From Dimorphilus gyrociliatus (taxonomy: Eukaryota > Animalia > Annelida): a stretch of 64,000 nt of DNA. A program made the translations under genes and the position numbers. Below, piece by piece: positions 49,905 through 61,900 of the stretch. The notes under the pieces were generated by a model. That model made no database searches. It was not told the DNA's origin and was given only the letters and a program-made list of their open reading frames with translations. The stretch is taken from contig CAJFCJ010000025.1 of the NCBI GenBank assembly GCA_904063045.1, positions 372,001 to 436,000 of the forward strand, read 5' to 3'. Each line of letters starts with the position of its first letter. The stretch's first letter is position 1.

Positions 49905-52900
49905 ATGAACGTCGGTCAAGATAAGGAGCTTAACGATCTTCTGGATTTCAGTGCGGTTAGTATTCTGAGTATTTAGCAGTCATGTGAACAAAAAAAAATA
50001 AGATAGTAAGTAACAAGAGAAAAACAACATAGTTAACCAAAGAACGAGCTGTTTGAGAAATCTAAAAGACGGTGAGAAATCGAGAGGTCAAGTTATGGTT
50101 ATCATAAAATACAAATTAGTATTGTTGCATTAATTTATGTTAATGTTATTCAAAACGCCTGAGAAATTTAGTATTAATAGGAAACATTTGAAATGTTTAA
50201 CAAATTAAAGTTCCTATTCGAGAAGTTTTTGACTTATTAAAGTTTGGCCAAGAAAAAAAAGAATAGAATGTTTACTCTAACAATTTATTATTATAAACTA
50301 TGATAAATGAAGTTTTTAAAGTAATAAACTATAATTATTCATCCTTATATAGTAATTTTTTTTTTTAATTTATTGAATATACATAACACTTAGAATAATT
50401 CAAGATGCTCTATTTTTTTAAAACACACCATTATATCCTTCATTATACATTATTCAAAGACTTGAACAAATTTTACACTGACTAACATATTAGGGCAATT
50501 AGTTAAGATGTAAAAGTTAACAGATGAAATTCTAACGATAAGTTAACAGATTAATGTAAATTACATCAACAAACGATCAATTTACATCTGTTTATGGATA
50601 TTTTACATTCGAATGACATTACATTTTTTTTAAATACTACAACTATTTATTTTCTTTTATTCTTATTAGCAGTATAAAAGTATTAAAATATCTTTTAATG
50701 AATTTATTTTTAGGTCAAAGGTTAATTCTTAGATAAATAGAATTTATTTTTTTCCTTTTGGATAAAAAGATGAAATAATAGAATTATGTGTAGTGTGAGG
50801 GGAAATCAACAGGGAGGTTGTAAGTGTCTTTTACCGTTTCGCTTTTATTGATGCCATTCTTGGCTTGTTATACAATATATTTTAGTAGTATTTAATAACT
50901 TAACCGCAACGTAAAATACCAATGTTAACAGCAATAAAATGAAATAAACAATAAAGTCAAAAAATTCATAGCCAATTGTTAAGGTTATAGGTTAATACTT
51001 GCTATGTCTGCCACACAATTTATAATAGTAGTCGTAACGGCTTGAAAGACGTCTTTTACGCTTTAATCAATCGTTTAAGGTGAAAACATTGAAGGATTTC
51101 TGTCTCGTCTCTTTCTCACTGTCTATCGTTCATCTTAAGATGTCTGAGTAAGACGTTTGCAATGTGTATAAAAAACGATTCGGCAGTTATTAACGGTCCG
51201 GTTAGGGGATGACCGCTGGTCAAGAAACCAGGGTTAGGTTATAGGTTAATGTATACTACATCTGGCCGTGAAGAAAATGTAATTTTAATCGAATTTCAGA
51301 TGTTCTCACCACCCGTTCGATCTTCAAACAGTAACGTCGAAACGACGTCCTACAGACACGGTTAGTGAAAATTTTTTTATACCATTCTTGAGATTCGTAA
51401 AAGAATGTGTGTGTATATATATAAATATATAAAAAAGATAGATATTATCAATAAACTTAGAATAAAACGGAAAGAGAGGTGATAATAATATAAAGTATAA
51501 AAGTTGAGCAAAAAAAAAATGCGATAAAAGATAAGGAAATGGGAACAGAAATAAAGTGAACTTATACTCTTGTTTTATTCGAGGCGGAAAGAAGTAAAAA
51601 TTGAGCCCTGTGATTAGTAGTAAGTCGAGGCGGAAAGAGTAATGATATTTACCGCAACAGTCACTTCTTAGCTGCCCAATTGATCTTACCGCCCGGTAAA
51701 ACGTTGCTATGGTGACGGATATCTATCAAAAGGCGTTTCTTACGGGCGTCTAAGAGGCGATTATGCAATATTTACTGGGGCGTCTACTTTTCTATTTTTC
51801 GAGGCTTCTTACATAAGCTACGCTGCTGGCGTTTTTTCAGGAAGCGGGTAAGATATAATAGAGGTGGAGATAGGGAAGGGGGTAAATGGAAAAACGAACG
51901 TTAGTTCGTATGTTTTTTGAAAGAATTACTTTAAACGACTGGTGATCTCTTATTGCTTAGTTAAGTGTGTTTTGGGGATTTTATATATTTTTTATACTGT
52001 CTACAATCGGACTATTTGTATATTGTTACTCGTAAAAGTAGGAAGAGGAAAGTATCTCGGAGGAAATAAAATAGCCTTTTCTTCTATTTTACTTTTTCCT
52101 TTTTCTTACAAAGATTTTTTTGGGGAAAAAGCGAAAATTGATTTTTTCCTTCTTAACTTTTTTTTATTCGACTATCCCATTCTTGGCAACAGGAGTACCA
52201 AGTGCGGTTCTATTATAGATCTATCTTTAACGGATTTGTTTACTGAATGACTTTTGTACCTTGTGAAAAAATCTTTCACGTCCTCGTCTTCCAAGCTCTC
52301 AATCTCTGTGTATCTCTCTTTTTCTGCCTTTTCTTCGAACAATAAACTCTGTACCTTTAGCAAGATCAATTTGGGAAATTAATTACGCGTCTTGTCATTT
52401 CCATGTGTTATTGTAGTTATAGCATACTTTTTTATGTTATTGAATAAAGAAGAGAGTATATAGCATTAATTGCTAACCTTATCAAATAATAGTTATCAGA
52501 ATAGCTTATTTTAGGACTACTCGCTCATTTTTTATTTAAAAATTACGTAGTTTTCTTAAAAGATGTTGTTGAATTTTTATATAAAAGCATTAACTACATA
52601 GTTAAGTTTTTTATTATTATTTATGAGAATAGTGAAAGGTTAACTTATTAGAATTCATTGTGTGTTTTTGCGCGCGCATTTTATGTAAATTTGTAGCTAA
52701 TTACTCGTAACTAAAGAACACTACGTAGGAATATTCTTTAGGGAGGTTTGAAAAAAGAGTAGGATTGTAAATCATGTATAAATAGGTAAAAAAAAACTTT
52801 ACCCATCCGTCTACTAAATCGTGTAATAACCGACCGCAACCTACGTAAGGTTATCTAGAGAAAATGTATCGTTGCGGAACATTCGTACCGCCAATTGAAA

Positions 52901-55900
52901 ACAGACGGAGATGTGCTTCCGCGAAAAATCTGTTTTTCCTGCTCGACTCAGCTGATCTTCCAGGCGCAGGTGGAAGGCATTAGACAGCTGCATCGGTAGC
53001 TGGAAGCAGGTGGTGTGCAGCGATTCGCCAGAAACAGGTGCCTAAATTCTCGCAACATTTGCAATGGGATGACGCAGCTGTTTCTGTTGAGCAGCTGGAT
53101 AACAGATGGGTCGTCAGGGTCAATAAACCCGATATGAAAAGCGTTGAAGAAATTCTTTCGATATCTTGCCTCTGTTTTGGAATTTTTAAGCTATCGTTGC
53201 CCTCAAGCGTGGTATCTATGAATGCTCAACTATGTCTTCTCTCTCGATAATAATGATTTTTTATCAATCCGTTCGTCTCTCTTAACTAGGATAACAAGGA
53301 ACTCGTTAGGCACAAGATTTTTTAAATGAAGTATTAATTTATGTACTTTTGTTTTCTTAACGAAATTTAAACTCTGTTGTCTTCAAATCGGGTTTGCTTA
53401 TCTTAATTAATTCTTTCCACATGTTAGAAACGGCTATTCCTTTTCAATTATGGATGAATTTGTTATATTTTATTTTACAATCTTAGCCTCGACTCCTCCG
53501 CCTCCGTAACAATCAATCAAACTTATTTGAACAATTTCTTATATCAATTATAGACACATGGCAGTATAGATTGCCGGTTAGGGAATGGATAGTCTTAAAC
53601 AAAGTTTATTGAACATGAGTGGGGAAGCTAAAGTTTTTTACATGTCCATTGATGATGAACTTAAAATAGAGGTATATGTAAAATTTGCCTGATAAAACTA
53701 TTTCACAGAAAGTTTTCTTTCAAAACATTTCTGCCAGCTAGCTGATAACAGGTGGATGTTATCAGCCGCCAAAGATAGCGCCTTATCGGGCTTAAGTTTG
53801 CAGTAAGCGTGACGGCGAGTCGGTAAACAACGTAAACAAAGACTCGACCGACTTATTGTTTGTCACGTTCCATCGTTTGTTCGTACAATCCTCAACTGAA
53901 AGACAATGCTTAAAGCAATGTATAAATGCCAGTAAAAGGGAGTAGAGATCGTTTTTGCGCGTTGTGGGAAGACGACAGATTGTTACTTGATTAGACACTC
54001 ATTCTCTATTTTAACAATTAAACGAGCTATGTAAACGTTCAATCAATTTTTTTTTTAATTTTATTTTCTACGTCACCTTGATTGGAGATAGAAAACAATT
54101 GTTGATTCTTGTCCTTTGAACTGAAAAAATATAAAAAGTAATATGGCACTATTTCCCTTTATACCAACAAGAAGTCTCTATATTCAACAATTAACAAAGC
54201 TTTGCTAGGGATTAATGAATTTTTCTTAATAATTGATTTTTAGTGGCTGGGGAAAGAAGTGCTGCTTGTCTTTGTTACAAAAATTGATTGTTCTTTTGTG
54301 CTGCACGGTAGAGCGCGTGTTCAAAATTGGGAATAATTTGAAGAAACGTTCGTAAATAATTCAAGATGTCGCAGCTGATTGAACCCTTGAGGTTTGCAGG
54401 AATAGTAGCGAATCACGGAAACTTGTAAATGGGAGTCTTTCATCCTTCCGGTTCTAAATGTTGACCCTATATAGTTCAATTTACTAAACAAGGTCGCTTA
54501 GTTCAAATCATTTTATTCAATAGATATAAACAAAAACCCATTAACAATAGGATATATAATTTTTAAATTTTTTCAGGCTTTATTCCGCAGTTGTTTTTTC
54601 CGATTAGTCCCTTTTCAATTGTTAAATAATGACGTTTAGATTATATCAACTTAAATAACTCATTATATTCATTCGATAAGAAATAGGGGAATATGGGATT
54701 CTACAATAGGTTTTGAATAAAAATAGGCCTTTATGTTGTCGGATGATTCTCAATACGGATTTCGTTACAATTTTCGATTAAAATTTGACTTTTTAATGTT
54801 CTTTTATGGCATTTTCTAAAGTCGCTTTTTAATTGGTTGATTCTCTTTAACTCTATTTTTAAACTTACTCTAGAGCAGAGGATTAATTCTCCTAATATTT
54901 GACACTTTCGCCCTTTAACCTGTATTATTCGTTTTAGCCGAGGCTCTGACCCTAATCCATAGCTGTATAACCCCTTCTTTTTAGATGAAAATATTGAAAA
55001 AAGTATTTTTTCCATTATGCTCTATGCGGTTGTTTATATAATGGCTAATTCCTCGCAAAGATATTTTTTAAATAACTATTGTTTGCCAAAGGCAATTTAA
55101 ATGTCGGTAGATGGAGTTTGAGTGGATATCACGAGCAAGAGTTGTGACGAATCAATCACATAAAAATATATATGATGGGAGATTTTAATATCACTAGATG
55201 GAGTTAGAAGAAGTAATAAATTGAGAAAGAGATTGAAGGAGAGAGAGAGATAGATAGAGAGAATAGTCAAGTATTCAAGCAAGTGTTAAGATTATAAATC
55301 TAAAAATGATTGAGACCATTCAGATAAAGCATGATTGCCTGGTTTTGATGTAAGTTCCCACCGCCCCAATCGTTTTCATTAAGGCGTCGGAAATGTAAAG
55401 CAGTCTGCAGTTGACAGCCCGACGTGAAGAAAAGGAAGGAAGAGCCGCTAATGGAGCGTAATAGAAAATGCGTAGGAGACGAGACGATTTTTTTTATTAA
55501 ATGAGTTTATAAGGAAAAACAATTAAAAAAATTAATAGGTTATGTTCCTTCAATGAACAATAAGCCATTTTTTATAGATAAATTTAATAACTGATATCAA
55601 GGTTATTTAAGAGAGTTTTTAACTATTCAACTAAGTCAATAAGAAAATCATATTAGTGTGAAAAGGGCGGCGAATTTCAACTTGGTTTATTTGATAAAAT
55701 AAATTTGATTTCCTTCTTTTTTTTGATCTATTTATTAACTGTTTATGGCTATGTCGTAGTATTCGTACGTTAAGAAAAAGTAACTTTGTTTAAAAAGACG
55801 AGTAATGGCGAAACAATTATGGGAAGCGAAGTGAAGTTGAGAGAAGATTAAATGGAATGCGGATGTTGTCCAGGTAAAACTTCTCACCATATCTCGGTTA

Positions 55901-58900
55901 AAGAGAGGATGCTGTGTATAAATCAATTTAAATCGATATGTAGAGGTCGAATCAATAAAAGTAGTTATGTTTTAGTAAAAAATATATGAAGAGAATGCAA
56001 AATGACTTAGTCAGTTTAGAGTGCTATTGTTAATTTGCGGTTTCTCTAGAGGTATGTTCACAAGGTGAATGTAGTTCGTGACTGTCTGTTTTTCATATTG
56101 GACGGAAAACTAAAAACGTAACGTTATAATAAGGTCACGTAATCGTCTGTCGTTCGCCTGACAGTGATGTTTGCCAAACAAGCAAGAGAAAAACTAGGCC
56201 AAACTCTCTCTCTATACCGCTGCTGCTGCTCTGCAAACAAGGCTGGGAAAAGAACTGTGTTATATAGCTTTAGAGAATTTTAGAAATATATAGCGCCTAG
56301 ACCAGATAAGACAAACCGCTCTAACTCCCTTATCATTTTTTATTGTGCATTGTGTAAACAGCGGAAAAAATCGTAAAATTCGCACTTGGCTTTTGTTCCC
56401 AGCAGTCTTGTGTTTCATGCTGAAGTGAATTGACATAAAATTTTACACCAAGTGTCTCGCCGCACTGACAATCCGACCTTAAAAATACAATTACTAAAGG
56501 TCCTACTATCAAAATATATTCTCCTTCGAGAAAGAATGCGACCCATCTCCTTCTATATCAATGCTTCATTATTCTCTGTATTTTCTTTTTTAATTTCTTC
56601 ATGTCAAAGTTCTTTTTCTTTAATTTATTGGTTTTAAGATGCTGTTAAAAGGGAAAAATTTCAATATTGAAAGCCTTGACAATCGACGGACTCGAGTAAT
56701 TGTATTTTATTGTCTGCCTATCACAATCGACATTTCAATTATTCCACGAGCTGGAACATTTCTCTTACTATTCTCAAAGGCGATCTTTTGATCTTGGAAC
56801 TGTTCGCATTTACTTTTCTCGATGATATTTCATTTTGATTTTGTAAGATGACGAGAAATTCGCCTTTTATGGTATATCAATTATTGAACTGTGTAAAGTT
56901 TTGGTTTTTGCATAAATATGTTAGGTATTCGCCTTGGATAAAGTATGATATATATATATATCTAAATTTATATATGTATATACTCATATTGTTCTCTCGT
57001 TTGCTTATATGGCAACTAACTTTTAGAATGGGGGGTGGAAAGGGGAGGGGTAGGAGGAGGTGAGACGGAAGTTTAAGAGAAATAGCTTAACACTCGGGCC
57101 ATTTAACACGTCCTCAATTGGATTTTCACCCTTGTTTGCCCGAGTCGAGTTTGGCAATTATACAAAAGGTTAATCCGTTTGAGTGGATTTAGCACGTGTT
57201 TTAATTACGTCATAGTACTTTGCTAGAGCTAATTGATTTCTTACGTTATTTAAAGAATGCTCGATTAAAGTTAGCGGCGTTCTTTAGAAGGCCTTTAGGC
57301 GCGTTAAAATCGCCTATTCTTTATTGACTTTTCACGCCTTGAACAAAAGCTCGTTTCGCGCTAGCATAGTTCACTTATAAATTTTTATGAGAGTTATTGA
57401 ATTGCTATCGAAAGCCTACAACCCAGGATACTCTACCCATTTTTATTAGTCTATCAACTTCTTAACCATTTAGCTTTTGATTAATAAAAGTAACTTGAAC
57501 CCATAATTCTTTTGTTGTTTTGACAACGGCAATTACGTCCATCCGTTCGAACAATTGCTTTTAACATAGTTTTATTGGACTTTTAAATTTATATTTATGT
57601 TTGGCCAGATTACTGTTGTACTTAAATAGTAGAATGAGAAAAAGGTTAAAAAAAATTGGAACAATCGTTCCTATTGTCCTGAACTCTTTAAGGGTTAGGA
57701 GGGTAAACCCAAAAACAAAAACTTACAGAAGAAAAGCGTTCTTTCTCTTTTCTTTTTTCTCTTTTTATTTATAGACGGTAACCGTCACTTTTCAAAAAAT
57801 AATGAAAAAAAAGAGACTAGTATATTAATTGAAAAACTTTTATTATCAATCAGGTGTTGATCGTACTTGAATATAGTTGTAGTGTGCATACCGTATTTAA
57901 ACTGCTTCAATAGTATATTGACAGTGCAATGAAATATATAAAGTTTAGTTCTTGGGTTCTGAACTACAAGTCAAAATATTCAAATATACATACAGCATAT
58001 ATATACTCTTTATATTTGAATATGTATATATGTATATATAAATATATATAATAAAAGAGAGAAATAGAAGAATTGAGAAAGGAAATCCGTGTTAGGATAT
58101 ATTATTCCGACCCGATGACCCCTCGAATAAAAGAACTTCTTTTTATGTGCCATATCGTAAGAACAAACAAAAGGGGTGTGAGATAGAGAGGTGAGAATGG
58201 AATTTACACTAATAAAGAATCTTTTAAATAAAAAAATAAAAGACGAGTGAGAGAAAACCGCAAAAATGCCTGGCGCCAGGCAGTCTAGCATATCGAGACT
58301 GCCTGACGCCAAATTGGGCCTATATTGTGTGAAACTAGGTAGTGGTCTCGGCTATTGAAATTTCGCCGAAAACTGGTCATCGGTCAGTGGGAATTTCCCA
58401 GTCGTTTAAAGGATAGCGTTGAAGGCACATCAATAGTAAAATTAATGGTGTTATTTTACTACAAAACGCCCGCTTTTCGCTCGTTCAACACTAAATGACC
58501 CGAGCTGACACCCCGATTGTGGAGATAGTATAGTCCATTTTTTAAGATATACCTTTATACCTGTAAATGGTCTACGAAAATCGTATAGTTTTGTGAATTA
58601 CACTACTCTAAAGGATACTGCGATGTGGCAGAATATTCCCTGCAGAAGATCGACAATTCAGTGGCACGCTCTTAGTCCAGGTATATACCAAGAGGTGTTT
58701 CCTAGGCAACCCGGCAAGCGGAGTGGAAAAAATGCAAGAAGCTCCACTCGACCGTGTTGGAAACGATAAATAAGGGCGATAATGGAGAAGAGCTAATGAA
58801 ATCGTGCAATTAAATGACGCTAATCGAATCTTGGGGGTGGAGGATGAAGGGAATTAGATGTCGCTAGACGGCGATTATCATTTTGCGCAGTTTGCGTTTT

Positions 58901-61900
58901 AAACTATGCTCTTTCCTTTCTCCTCCCCTTCTCATTTCTCTCTTACAAACGCTTGATTAAGGGGATCGCTCGGTATAATCCCGTATTATGTCGAGGGTCT
59001 TATGGAGATGATCATTTGCCTCTTCTGTCAGCTATGGACTTGTACCTCTCATTCCCATGTAGATTATTTTTTTTTAGCGGAAGTCATTTATCACATCCTG
59101 AGAACATCTAGCTTTTGAATTGAATGACATCGATTTATCTTTAAATAATATTTCTTTACCAATCCTATCGTTAAAAGCTTAGAAAGATAGTTCAAAACGA
59201 AGTATATACTTATAAATATATATATATATATATACATTTTGGTATATATGAACATACAAATTGTGTATGTATATAGATCTTTATGGAAGTTGATTTCAAA
59301 GTCGTAGGGTATATGATACCAATCAGTCAGTGTTAAAGTCATACCAAGATAATAATTGCAGATTTTATAAAAGAAAATTATATTGTCTACCAAATCTTTT
59401 ATCATGCAAAAAAGAATTATTGCAATAATCAGTTGCGCACTTTGTTTGTTAACTCGTCCATTCGTTTTTGTTAAGTATTTGTATTCAAAATATATTGGTA
59501 GGGTTTTGAATTGTAGATTTTACTTATTATTTCCACACCTTATTGTGTATCGGGGCGTGATTTCTTTTTTCAATCTAATATAAATAAAGGAAATGATTTA
59601 GTTAATTGCATAAGTTGAATTCTTTACACTTAAGCAAGTTATTCAAGATTTATTCAAATAGAGGGAGAATATCTTTCAATTCTCTATTAATAACTATCAA
59701 CATATCAAAAAACTATTTCATAGAATATATAAACCGATAATCACTAGCTCAATGTCTTGTGTATTATTTTGATTTGTTCTTTTTCGCCTATCTGTTCCTT
59801 TAAAAAAAAATCGATATTTTTTGGACAACTTTTATAAAGAACCTCTTTTCTGAAGAAACGAAAAAGGCGCTGACGGTTTCTTTTATGAAAAGGCGTTGAA
59901 TAGTATAATCGTTTTGAGAAAATGAGAATTTTTTTTCATTGAATTATAGGGGTGATGTAAATGCTAAAACGTTTTTTTCTTCCTTTAGACGTACAAAGTG
60001 ATGCTGGTAGTTGGCATTCGCATAGCAATCAAAATAGCCCGAATTATTCTGATTCAACGGTAAGAAACTACTCTAATCTTTCATGCCTATTTGTGTATAT
60101 AGAGACTATTATATATTGAATTGGAAATTCTTATAAAGAATTTAGTTGTCCTATAGTACTTAATTTTTTTCTTCTCTTTGCATTTTATACAAACACATAG
60201 TTTAGGTATCTACTTATAATTTCTGTATTTACCTTAAGCCTTGATAAAAATTCAAGTGGTTTTTCCACTAATTATCTTTTGAATTCAAACTTTCTTTGTC
60301 ATTGTTTACACAACCGAAGAAAAAAAAGATAATAGATATAAATATCTACTTAAGTTTCGCAAACAAACAAAATATATACTGAATTTCCATTTCTAGTCTC
60401 TTTCTCCTGTTTTTTTTGATAAGATTACATTCGAAACAAAATTCTCATACAGTTTTCATGCACTTTTTCTTACACTTATCACTATCAAAACGTTATAGAT
60501 TAGTCTTTTTTTTACTGTTTAATGTAACAAAGATAGTTATATTTTTATTTATTCAATGCAGCAAATCTTTGACAATGCTTCGGCCAACTTCAATGGCGAT
60601 CAGCAGCCGTATCCTCCATCATCGAATCTAGAAATTCTCAGTAAGTTAAACTCAATATACTCAGTTATTAGAGATGGCCAGAAAAAAAAATCAAAAGTGC
60701 ATTCTTCAGAATGACTTTTAAAAATGAGGTTAAGGGTAGGGGAGAGTAAGGGGGTGAGTGAAGGAGAGAAAATTAATGAGGGAAAGAAGTAGAAGGGCTG
60801 TGAGAGACGTGCATCGTTTGACATTATTTTTGACGTTTCTGTTTTCCATCAAGTGAACCGTGGTACAATAGTTTGCCAGCTTCGCCAAATCGATAGCATG
60901 TGTTGAAAAGTATTCCTAGTTTGTCGCGCTTAAGTAAGAGATGCTTCCGTTTGTTTATAAAAGAAAAAGTTTAGGACAAAGTTAAAGTTTATAAAAGACA
61001 TGAGATATGCGTATTTAGTTTTATTTTTAAGGGTGAAAGTTTATCGGTAGACAATAAAAGAAAAAGTTTTAAAAATACGCATCGGCGATGACAGATACAA
61101 TCCTAAAGAATATAGACATCAATAGCCAAAGTTAGATTATTTTTCCCTTTTTTTGCATCTCAAGGAGCTCTTTTAAATTTATACCGAAATTCTAGCCGCT
61201 TCTCAAATATCAAGCATAAAAGTATTTAAAAAGGCTTTTTAACTGATACTATGATATAATTCCCTTGTACTTGATATAAAGAATAAATATTTTCTTGAAA
61301 TCTCCTTGGAACAATGACGTAATTAAGAGGATAAAAACAATAATAAGGGAGTTTCCTGCGTTAAATCTTACATTTAAAGTGAAATTTTTATCATTCTAAT
61401 TAAAATTTCTTTATTAGTTTTACTATTCGTAGAAATAAAAAAAGACACAGATAACTAACTGTAAATTAGCAAAGTTTTACACATTCTATACCACTATTGA
61501 GTGTAGTAGAAAACAGCGTTGATACTTAGGAGATTTGAAGTGGAGGTACGTTGATAGATCTTTCTTGCACAAAGCAGTCTAGTTTTTCACGTTTTCTACA
61601 AAACCTCCTACTGACTATCGCTCTCTTTCTCTCTACACCCACACCCCTCTTTAGTCATTCTGCTTCTTCTCTCGCCAAAATATTACGTCATTCAGGGACA
61701 AAGGGAATGAAAATGATGACAAATCCAATTGTTTTCTTACTCTTTACAAAATATTTCTATACATTAATGTATATACTATATATATATATAGCGAATATTG
61801 TGTATACATTATACAAGGAATATATACTATATATATATATATTAGAACATATATATTTCAGTTTTTGTATTTTTCAACTTTTCTAGATTTATTTACGAAA

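Follow-up and report, generated by a model that had tools for sequence, protein, structure and literature searches.

A candidate paired Smad1/5-Smad4 BMP-response element in a large intron of an annelid E-protein gene

Introduction

Does BMP signalling act directly on an E-protein gene, besides restraining E-protein activity post-translationally through Id induction, as it is thought to do? The question is raised by a 45-base element in a large intron of an annelid E-protein gene, located within a 64,000-nucleotide stretch of DNA that was analysed here (the window), in which a palindrome is combined with two inverted copies of a pattern shared with known Smad composites. We consider this element a candidate paired Smad1/5-Smad4 BMP-response element, with a probability of about one half, through which BMP may control the E-protein gene directly. 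A literature search found no paper tying an E-protein gene to either a BMP-SE or a BMP-AE, in agreement with the preceding sequence-only reading of this DNA, which had not seen such a direct element described.

Results

The host gene

Judged by its domain matches, the host gene is a true E-protein (class I bHLH) gene. For the AD1 exon at 49905, the match is to the AD1 of E2A in PDB entry 2MH0 (E = 0.007), and the best matches of the bHLH exon at C25:455.7k are E2A (1.4e-24) and TCF4 (1.8e-21); the E-protein exons follow in order along the + strand, with AD1 and an E2A/TCF4-type bHLH in one locus. The element is intronic: in a large intron, it follows the AD1 exon and precedes exon 59989-60058, which has RNA support (Table 1). 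What the sequence-only reading had called an E-protein intron is upheld as regards the gene, by the AD1 and bHLH matches, and as regards the intronic position, by the RNA-supported exon downstream. Two loose ends in the RNA contigs, at 58440 and 60299, were rejected as splice joints, as they belong to C1:3283856 and C6:1044045.

Table 1 Features of the element and of the E-protein locus around it (positions in the window; X2, X3 and X4 are sequencing runs).
Feature	Position	Strand	Basis
First coding exon, AD1 motif DKELNDLLDFSA, approximate 3' boundary	49905..49955	+	match to E2A AD1, PDB 2MH0
Contig of run X3, deepest in the 6 kb examined (44 vs 4-11.5; contig depth is a crude measure)	58261..58395	.	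run contigs
Whole element, palindrome and inverted twin composites	58267..58311	.	direct reading, inverted-repeat search; single copy in the 77.9-Mb genome
Perfect palindrome TGCCTGGCGCCAGGCA, centre GGCGCC	58267..58282	.	direct reading
Left composite: GC-rich Smad box GGCGCC, linker AGGCA (5 nt), Smad-binding element GTCT, then A	58272..58286	+	pattern match
Central 9 nt AGCATATCG separating the inward-facing GTCT/AGAC boxes	58287..58295	.	direct reading, inverted-repeat search
Right composite (minus-strand reading): GGCGTC, linker AGGCA, GTCT, then C	58296..58310	-	pattern match
Putative TATA-like box TATATT, 11 nt downstream of the element	58322..58327	+	direct reading
Unspliced RNA-contig block within the intron	58408..59553	.	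X2, X4; neighbouring intron bins empty in the same runs
E-protein exon directly downstream of the element's intron	59989..60058	+	GT..AG joint 60058 to 60561 in X2, X4 RNA contigs; splice sites read
Following E-protein exon	60562..60640	+	RNA contigs, splice sites read

Sequence and geometry

The element comprises the 45 bases TGCCTGGCGCCAGGCAGTCTAGCATATCGAGACTGCCTGACGCCA (58267-58311, coordinates as read directly), of which the first 16 bp (58267-58282) form a perfect palindrome. Its inverted repeat has arms of 16 nt (58271-58286 and 58296-58311) that are 94% complementary, with one mismatch, across a 9-nt gap. The pattern GRCGNC-N5-GTCT matches twice in the 64-kb window (58272-58286 on the + strand, 58296-58310 on the - strand), where 0.13 matches are expected, and none of 100 shuffles gave two. 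GTCT is followed by A on the + arm and by C on the - arm. The inverted repeat, the palindrome, the exact GRCGNC-N5-GTCT of both arms and the A or C in place of G after GTCT had all been reported from the letters and were recovered at 58267-58311. Moreover, no other inverted repeat in the 64 kb combines arms of 16 nt with a gap of up to 30 nt and not more than one mismatch; first-order Markov simulations produced 0.1 repeats of this class on average, and 0.01 when the G+C content of the arms was required to be 50% or more. The sole arm-to-arm mismatch sits at a degenerate position of the GRCGNC consensus. The 12-mer TGCCTGRCGCCA is present three times within the 45 bp, and the linker AGGCA recurs threefold in the element.

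An inverted repeat of this kind could be the remnant of transposon terminal inverted repeats (a MITE) or a transcribed RNA hairpin, e.g., a microRNA precursor, and the element does form a stable hairpin, with -18.7 kcal/mol (z = -4.7) when folded as single-stranded DNA. However, queries of 121 nt and 841 nt around the element match only themselves in the 77.9-Mb genome; the element is single-copy and therefore no MITE, and the multi-copy MITE remnant that had been named in advance as the outcome that would speak against a BMP-response element was looked for by these queries and is absent. The left-arm 16-mer (the composite and the preceding T) has one further genomic copy, at C4:953766, whose flanks are unrelated, and the flanks of the other GGCGCC-N5-GTCT sites are also unrelated except for one haplotig-like pair; a MITE or other repeat was rejected on the grounds of single copy number and these unrelated flanks. 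An RNA hairpin was rejected as well, given that the element has no Rfam match, that its stem, which ends at 16 bp without extending into the flanks, falls short of the length of a microRNA precursor, and that 58100-58299 is without RNA contigs from X2 and X4. Taken together, an origin as MITE or RNA hairpin is very improbable and already largely refuted.

Comparison with known Smad elements

In Drosophila, the BMP-SE has the form GRCGNC-N5-GTCTG, is read by pMad/Medea/Schnurri and occurs at brinker, bam and dpp; the BMP-AE has the form GGCGCCA-N4-GNCV, as at Dad. Both arms of the element fit GRCGNC-N5-GTCT with the exact 5-nt spacing and satisfy positions 12, 14 and 15, which are strict in the BMP-SE while positions 13 and 16 are relaxed (PMC9508838); in contrast to the G of the strict consensus, position 16 is A or C in the two arms. 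In flies, silencing is mediated by Schnurri fingers 6-8, which vertebrate homologues lack (PMC10853822); silencing by the worm element is therefore not implied. The left arm begins with GGCGCCA as does the BMP-AE, whereas the T at position 15 of the element is the mark of the SE type rather than the AE type; in the 94 kb surrounding the E-protein gene, there is no match to the AE pattern.

With the vertebrate ID-type BRE (ID1, ID2, ID3; GGCGCC-N5-GTCTG) the element shares the GC-rich Smad box, the obligatory 5-bp linker and the same-strand GTCT, which in ID-type composites lies downstream of the GC box (PMC11907993). From the human ID3-type GGCGCC-AGGCT-GTCTG, the left arm is set apart by just two bases, the last of the linker and the final G. 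The linker AGGCA carries G at +2 and +3, as in ID3 (AGGCT) and ID1 (TGGCT), and G at these positions is enriched in SMAD1-bound composites (PMC11907993); a hand tally of the 48 genome sites described below showed no such enrichment (~20%). According to PMC11907993, responses increase when the motif is multimerised, and BRE2-luc is a synthetic reporter built as a mirrored duplication, a design that the natural mirrored duplication of the element resembles. Unlike ID-type BREs, the element is without a trailing G, its right arm is GACGCC and not the palindromic GGCGCC, and it lies in an annelid E-protein intron instead of an Id promoter; GACGCC is absent from the motifs tested in PMC11907993, the human reporter work having used GGCGCC. 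The previously proposed geometry of GC box, 5-bp spacer and Smad-binding element stands, each arm fitting the published BMP-SE and ID-type syntax (PMC9508838, PMC11907993).

Spacing preference in the genome

This motif grammar appears to be in use in the genome that carries the element: the genome-wide count of GGCGCC-N5-GTCT is 48, compared with 23 sites for an N4 and 14 for an N6 spacer and a mean of 18.8 for the other spacers from 1 to 10. A reversed-pattern control yielded ~5.7 sites against this non-5-spacer average and understates the background, which is why the neighbouring spacers were taken as the baseline. G follows GTCT in 22 of the 48 N5 sites (G frequency 16.5%), and this trailing-G form is expected only ~2-4 times. 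The 26 N5 sites without it are weakly enriched over the roughly 12-19 expected from neighbouring spacers, and a single such site is therefore weakly informative.

The genome contains Smad1/5-like, Smad4-like and Smad7-like genes, and several sites are located at genes that BMP feedback would be expected to involve. The Id gene has GGCGCC-N5-GTCTG, CAGAC and two TGGCGCC boxes ~630 bp upstream, and the only noggin gene has a GGCGCC-N5-GTCT site ~150 bp upstream, with a trailing C as in the right arm of the element. Seven GGCGCC fall within 3.5 kb at the Smad7-like gene, an intron of which carries an inverted pair of activating-type motifs that match the BMP-AE exactly. For the best-scoring TGF-beta ligand gene, the C4:953766 twin of the left-arm 16-mer is found 5 kb downstream. 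Overall, a 5-bp-spaced Smad composite syntax that is enriched by its spacing and appears to mark Id, noggin and an inhibitory Smad gene is more solid than the reading of the individual element.

A second inverted twin is found in the intron of a TRIM gene (C7:4479848-4479907). Like the element, it has its GC boxes facing outward and its GTCT boxes inward and sits in a large intron; it differs in its inner gap (28 nt vs 9 nt), in a trailing G on both arms and in its unrelated linkers, which leave no sequence-level inverted repeat and make it a match at the level of the motif, not a sequence duplication.

Chromatin, transcription and competing explanations

The contigs of run X3 continue into Tn5/Nextera adapter sequence, and the library is probably the published ATAC-seq, which was reported for this worm in its genome paper (PMC7854359); the ATAC material was from adult females. 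The deepest local Tn5 contig begins 6 nt ahead of the element. An intronic transcript block starts ~100 bp downstream of the element, and an AATAAA is located near 59583 on the + strand. A kappaB-like site at 58389-58399 has a frequency not above chance in the window. In addition, a relative at ~88-90% identity was seen in coral metatranscriptomes, with a contig spanning 58068-58426; its sequence was sought by comparing eight intronic ORFs with a protein collection, by a word search with the ORF overlapping the element and by two metagenome scans (with the element and with a degenerate pattern from exon 59989-60058), none of which gave a match.

Several features count against a BMP-response element: neither arm has the trailing G, the form clearly enriched in the genome; the right arm is GACGCC rather than the palindromic GGCGCC; and the arms differ at just one of 16 positions and agree even in the linker, which is supposedly free. 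The last of these could equally reflect a recent neutral duplication by template switch. A chance or decayed GGCGCC-N5-GTCT would then have been copied in inverted orientation during replication, giving a quasi-palindrome without regulatory role in chromatin opened by neighbouring sequence; near-identical arms, linker included, are what a young duplication should leave, and sites without the trailing G barely exceed background. On the other hand, an exact and independent 16-mer copy exists elsewhere in the genome, the TRIM locus has an inverted twin at the motif level and not at the sequence level, and the deepest local Tn5 contig starts just ahead of the element. Furthermore, with just 48 GGCGCC-N5-GTCT sites in 78 Mb, it is unlikely that an inverted duplication would hit one by chance, and we regard a neutral origin as an improbable, though not negligible, explanation.

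The element could also be a functional cis-element, or the core of an intronic promoter or enhancer, that is read by another factor, the Smad match being incidental. The Tn5-library contig on the element and the TATA-like box and RNA block just downstream fit such a role, and the recurrence of the full 16-mer, linker included, at C4:953766 between unrelated flanks suggests specificity beyond GC box and GTCT. Candidates are some dimeric factor on the 12-mer and an E2F-like factor on TGGCGCCA, which we take to be the centre of the palindromic E2F consensus, or on TTTGGCGT, which is given by the right arm in reverse and which we presume to be E2F-like. Yet each arm is imperfect for E2F, the left one lacking the T run and the right one having CGT for CGC, while the Smad composite fits both arms exactly, the lone difference between the arms falls on a degenerate consensus position, and the genome-wide preference for 5-nt spacing fits Smads, as do the sites located at Id, noggin and the Smad7-like gene. 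Another factor as the true reader of the element is unlikely in our estimate. A CTCF site was also considered and rejected, since comparison by eye with the consensus gave ~9/14 positions, with the CT and TGG positions unmet. CTCF is the top motif in the open chromatin of this worm (PMC7854359).

Discussion

In the proposed mechanism of the candidate BMP-response element, phosphorylated Smad1/5 would bind with its MH1 domain to the GC box of each arm (left GGCGCC, right GACGCC) and Smad4 (Medea) with its MH1 domain to the GTCT box exactly 5 bp away. The inverted composites would then carry two Smad complexes, and the GTCT boxes would face inward at a distance of 9 bp. This would take place in probably accessible chromatin of the large E-protein intron, 11 bp upstream of the putative TATA-like box, and BMP signalling would act directly on the E-protein locus besides the classic Id route. 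Smad occupancy, BMP responsiveness, target promoter and sign of the effect are all steps that we infer. By analogy to vertebrate ID-type elements and fly neuronal BMP-SEs, the default sign would be activation, as repression would require a Schnurri protein with Smad-binding fingers. A more specific and only tentative version, which we hold to be rather doubtful, is that of a mirrored, BRE2-like BRE beside the TATA box of an intronic promoter, which would drive the intronic transcript or a short E-protein isoform and thereby place the E-protein locus under direct BMP control.

Considering the genome as a whole, a syntax that was defined in flies and humans is here enriched in a compact annelid genome, and it provides ~50 candidate direct BMP targets, a short and testable list for a spiralian. 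If the reading of the individual element is true, the mirrored intronic BRE would give the BMP-Id-E-protein axis a second arm, a direct one, and with a direct Smad element in an E-protein gene this axis would gain transcriptional control. Together with the element at the Id promoter, the intronic BRE would set up a loop on neurogenic bHLH activity: with a repressing element the pairing would work as a coherent feed-forward loop, with an activating one as a dosage buffer.

Results

Architecture and intronic position of the element

The paired, inverted arrangement of GC box, 5-nt linker and GTCT that the sequence-only reading had described as twin BMP-response elements was found exactly at 58267-58311 of the window (hereafter the element). 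The reported 16-bp inverted repeat with one mismatch was recovered by a repeat search (arms 58271-58286 and 58296-58311, 16 nt each, 9 nt apart), and the first 16 bases, TGCCTGGCGCCAGGCA, form the perfect palindrome that had also been reported. GRCGNC-N5-GTCT matches once on each arm, left on the plus and right on the minus strand, and is followed by A on the plus arm and by C on the minus arm, as read before; these are the two matches in the 64-kb window, compared with 0.13 expected, and none of 100 shuffles reached two. The sole mismatch between the arms sits at a degenerate position of the GRCGNC consensus, and the GC box of the right arm is non-palindromic. Moreover, a scripted scan (arms of 16 nt, no more than one mismatch and a gap no longer than 30) returned the element as the sole inverted repeat in the window, the simulated mean per window being 0.1 for such repeats and 0.01 for those with G+C-rich arms.

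What stands of the proposed placement in E-protein intron 3 is the gene and the intronic position, supported by AD1, RNA-joined, AD2-like and bHLH exons (see table), with E2A and TCF4 as closest solved relatives of the bHLH (E = 1e-24 to 1e-21). From the AD1 exon the element is 8.3 kb downstream, and 1.7 kb separate it from the next listed exon (59989-60058); since exons of the gene are present on both sides, it is intronic.

Coordinates of features discussed in the text (window positions, the window being C25:372001-436000, unless another contig, C, of the same assembly is named)
Feature	Position	Strand	Remark
AD1 exon of E-protein gene	49905	+	matches E2A AD1 peptide of PDB 2MH0
TATA-like TATATT	58322-58327		
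AATAAA	near 59583	+	
E-protein exon	59989-60058	+	GT..AG joint in RNA contigs
E-protein exon	60562-60640	+	GT..AG joint in RNA contigs
AD2-like and bHLH exons of E-protein gene	~20 kb past window end	+	
Noggin-linked site GGCGCC-GCTCT-GTCT	C5:3329777-3329791		trailing C; ~150 bp upstream of noggin
Noggin	C5:3329928-3330437		only match in the genome
Smad7-like gene	C2:3400186-3403627		
Dad-type inverted pair	C2:3402086-3402133		Smad7-like intron
Smad4-like gene	C2:3405140 onward		
TRIM intron motifs	C7:4479848-4482816		
TGF-beta-family ligand gene	C4:947985-948806		best-scoring
Exact copy of TGGCGCCAGGCAGTCT	C4:953766-953781		followed by G
bHLH-PAS gene	C7:1944002-1947624	-	single-minded-looking
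CGGCGCCAAGCAGTCT	C7:1951616		

Copy number and chromatin

An origin as a multi-copy MITE was checked with 121-nt and 841-nt queries around the element, which hit themselves alone genome-wide, ruling out a repeat. The element would fold into a stable hairpin, yet the stem has only 16 bp, Rfam gave no match, and RNA contigs of two runs (X2 and X4) were absent across 57100-58299, so that the RNA reading was likewise rejected; we consider a MITE or an RNA hairpin highly improbable. The 16-mer TGGCGCCAGGCAGTCT has one further exact copy in the genome, with unrelated flanks, 5 kb downstream of the ligand gene, against ~0.001 chance copies estimated from base composition. The linker AGGCA is common to this copy and both arms of the element, for which we offer no explanation. 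In addition, CGGCGCCAAGCAGTCT, which departs from the window 16-mer at a single linker position and in its 5' flanking base, C instead of T, is located ~4 kb upstream of the bHLH-PAS gene.

Sequencing run X3 belongs to the study that probably also yielded the assembly. Its contigs read through into Tn5/Nextera adapters (at 58395, 58488 and 60192), the behaviour expected of ATAC-seq, which is the probable library type; ATAC-seq from adult females accompanies the published worm genome of 73.8 Mb (PMC7854359). X3 contigs were present in only 13 of 30 bins, and the deepest, 58261-58395, begins six bases ahead of the element, with a depth of 44 versus 4-11.5 in the others (a crude measure, one figure per contig). 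X2 and X4 contain spliced E-protein exons together with an unspliced block, 58408-59553, adjacent intron bins being empty. An intronic start site just 3' of the element is possible, and the block may represent either a non-coding transcript from within the intron or an alternative E-protein first exon. A kappaB-like sequence, GGGAATTTCCC (58389-58399), lies 78 nt 3' of the element within the Tn5 contig, its frequency in the window not exceeding chance; such sites are reportedly bound by Schnurri/HIVEP finger pairs (PMC10853822). Furthermore, a relative's contig from a coral metatranscriptome (X6) crosses 58068-58426 with ~88-90% identity, and coral metatranscriptome and metagenome runs (X6-X8, X10) hold contigs similarly identical (~88-90%) to 55500-61499 over kilobases, with indels, which points to a divergent worm strain, or a sister species, living in coral aquaria or present in samples from reefs.

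Genome-wide use of the motif and sister sites

Across the genome (77.9 Mb, 32% G+C), GGCGCC-N5-GTCT occurs 48 times, compared with 23 sites with a 4-nt and 14 with a 6-nt spacer; spacers of 1-10 nt total 217, and the nine other than 5 average 18.8. G follows in 22 of the 48 sites while accounting for 16.5% of bases, and the full GGCGCC-N5-GTCTG form is therefore strongly enriched (22 observed, ~2-4 expected), whereas sites without the trailing G are mildly so (26 versus ~12-19). Flanking sequences, compared for 46 sites, show no relationship to one another except in one haplotig-like pair, so that a repeat family is ruled out. Spacers of 1 nt (11 among the first 100 of the 217 sites) and 4 nt (the 23 being a complete count) are also somewhat over-represented; examples are GGCGCCAGTCT and GGCGCCATCTGTCT, and a 1-nt form is present in the intron of the Smad7-like gene.

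Smad1/5-like and Smad4-like genes were found, the latter directly adjoining the Smad7-like gene. In that Smad7-like gene GGCGCC occurs seven times over 3.5 kb, and the intron carries exact Dad-type activating motifs as an inverted pair. The Id gene has one GGCGCC-N5-GTCT site ~630 bp upstream, beside CAGAC and two more TGGCGCC boxes. The site upstream of noggin, close to which a further GGCGCC is found, is a candidate for negative feedback on BMP signalling. The genome's densest GGCGCC-N5-GTCTG cluster, four within 3 kb, lies in a TRIM gene of class I (with RING, B-boxes, coiled coil and FN3), inside an intron of 5 kb. Two of the four are arranged as an inverted twin whose inward GTCTG boxes are 28 nt apart and whose linkers are unrelated. 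To our knowledge, such TRIM genes do not figure among the textbook targets of BMP.

Discussion

In flies, the BMP silencer element is GRCGNC-N5-GTCTG, with positions 12, 14 and 15 strict and 13 and 16 relaxed, and is activating where Schnurri is absent; the activating element is GGCGCCA-N4-GNCV (PMC9508838). Fingers 6-8 of fly Schnurri contact the Smad-DNA complex, and vertebrate homologues are without them (PMC10853822); any effect of the element could thus be of either sign. In human cells, the ID-type composite is GGCGCC-N5-GTCTG with obligatory 5-bp spacing, native linkers being TGGCT (ID1), AGAGA (ID2) and AGGCT (ID3); SMAD1-bound composites are enriched for G at linker +2/+3, and the response rises on multimerising, BRE2-luc being a mirrored duplication (PMC11907993). 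The element's arm GGCGCC-AGGCA-GTCT matches the human ID3 motif except for a single linker base and the missing final G.

Our best reading, to which we give a probability of about one half, is that the element, lying in a probably accessible part of an E-protein intron, is a paired BMP-response element of the Smad1/5-Smad4 composite type. This is favoured by the exact match of both arms, whose sole difference falls at a degenerate position, by the genome-wide enrichment of the 5-nt spacing, by related motifs at Id, at noggin and in the Smad7-like gene, and by the second motif-level inverted twin together with the Tn5 contig. It is weakened by the absent trailing G, which places the arms in the weakly enriched sub-class, and by the non-palindromic right GC box; that the element is instead another factor's site inside a real regulatory region appears unlikely. 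The inverted repeat also extends to the sequence level and could be a young neutral duplication, which weakens the Smad reading further and speaks for a neutral quasi-palindrome, an explanation that we likewise rate as doubtful.

Our literature search found no paper tying daughterless or an E-protein gene to the fly silencer or activating element. The motif type is well known; what would be new is its occurrence within an E-protein gene and, in nature, as a mirrored pair. The reading makes a specific prediction that could be tested at little cost, and the catalogue of sites across the genome is useful in itself.
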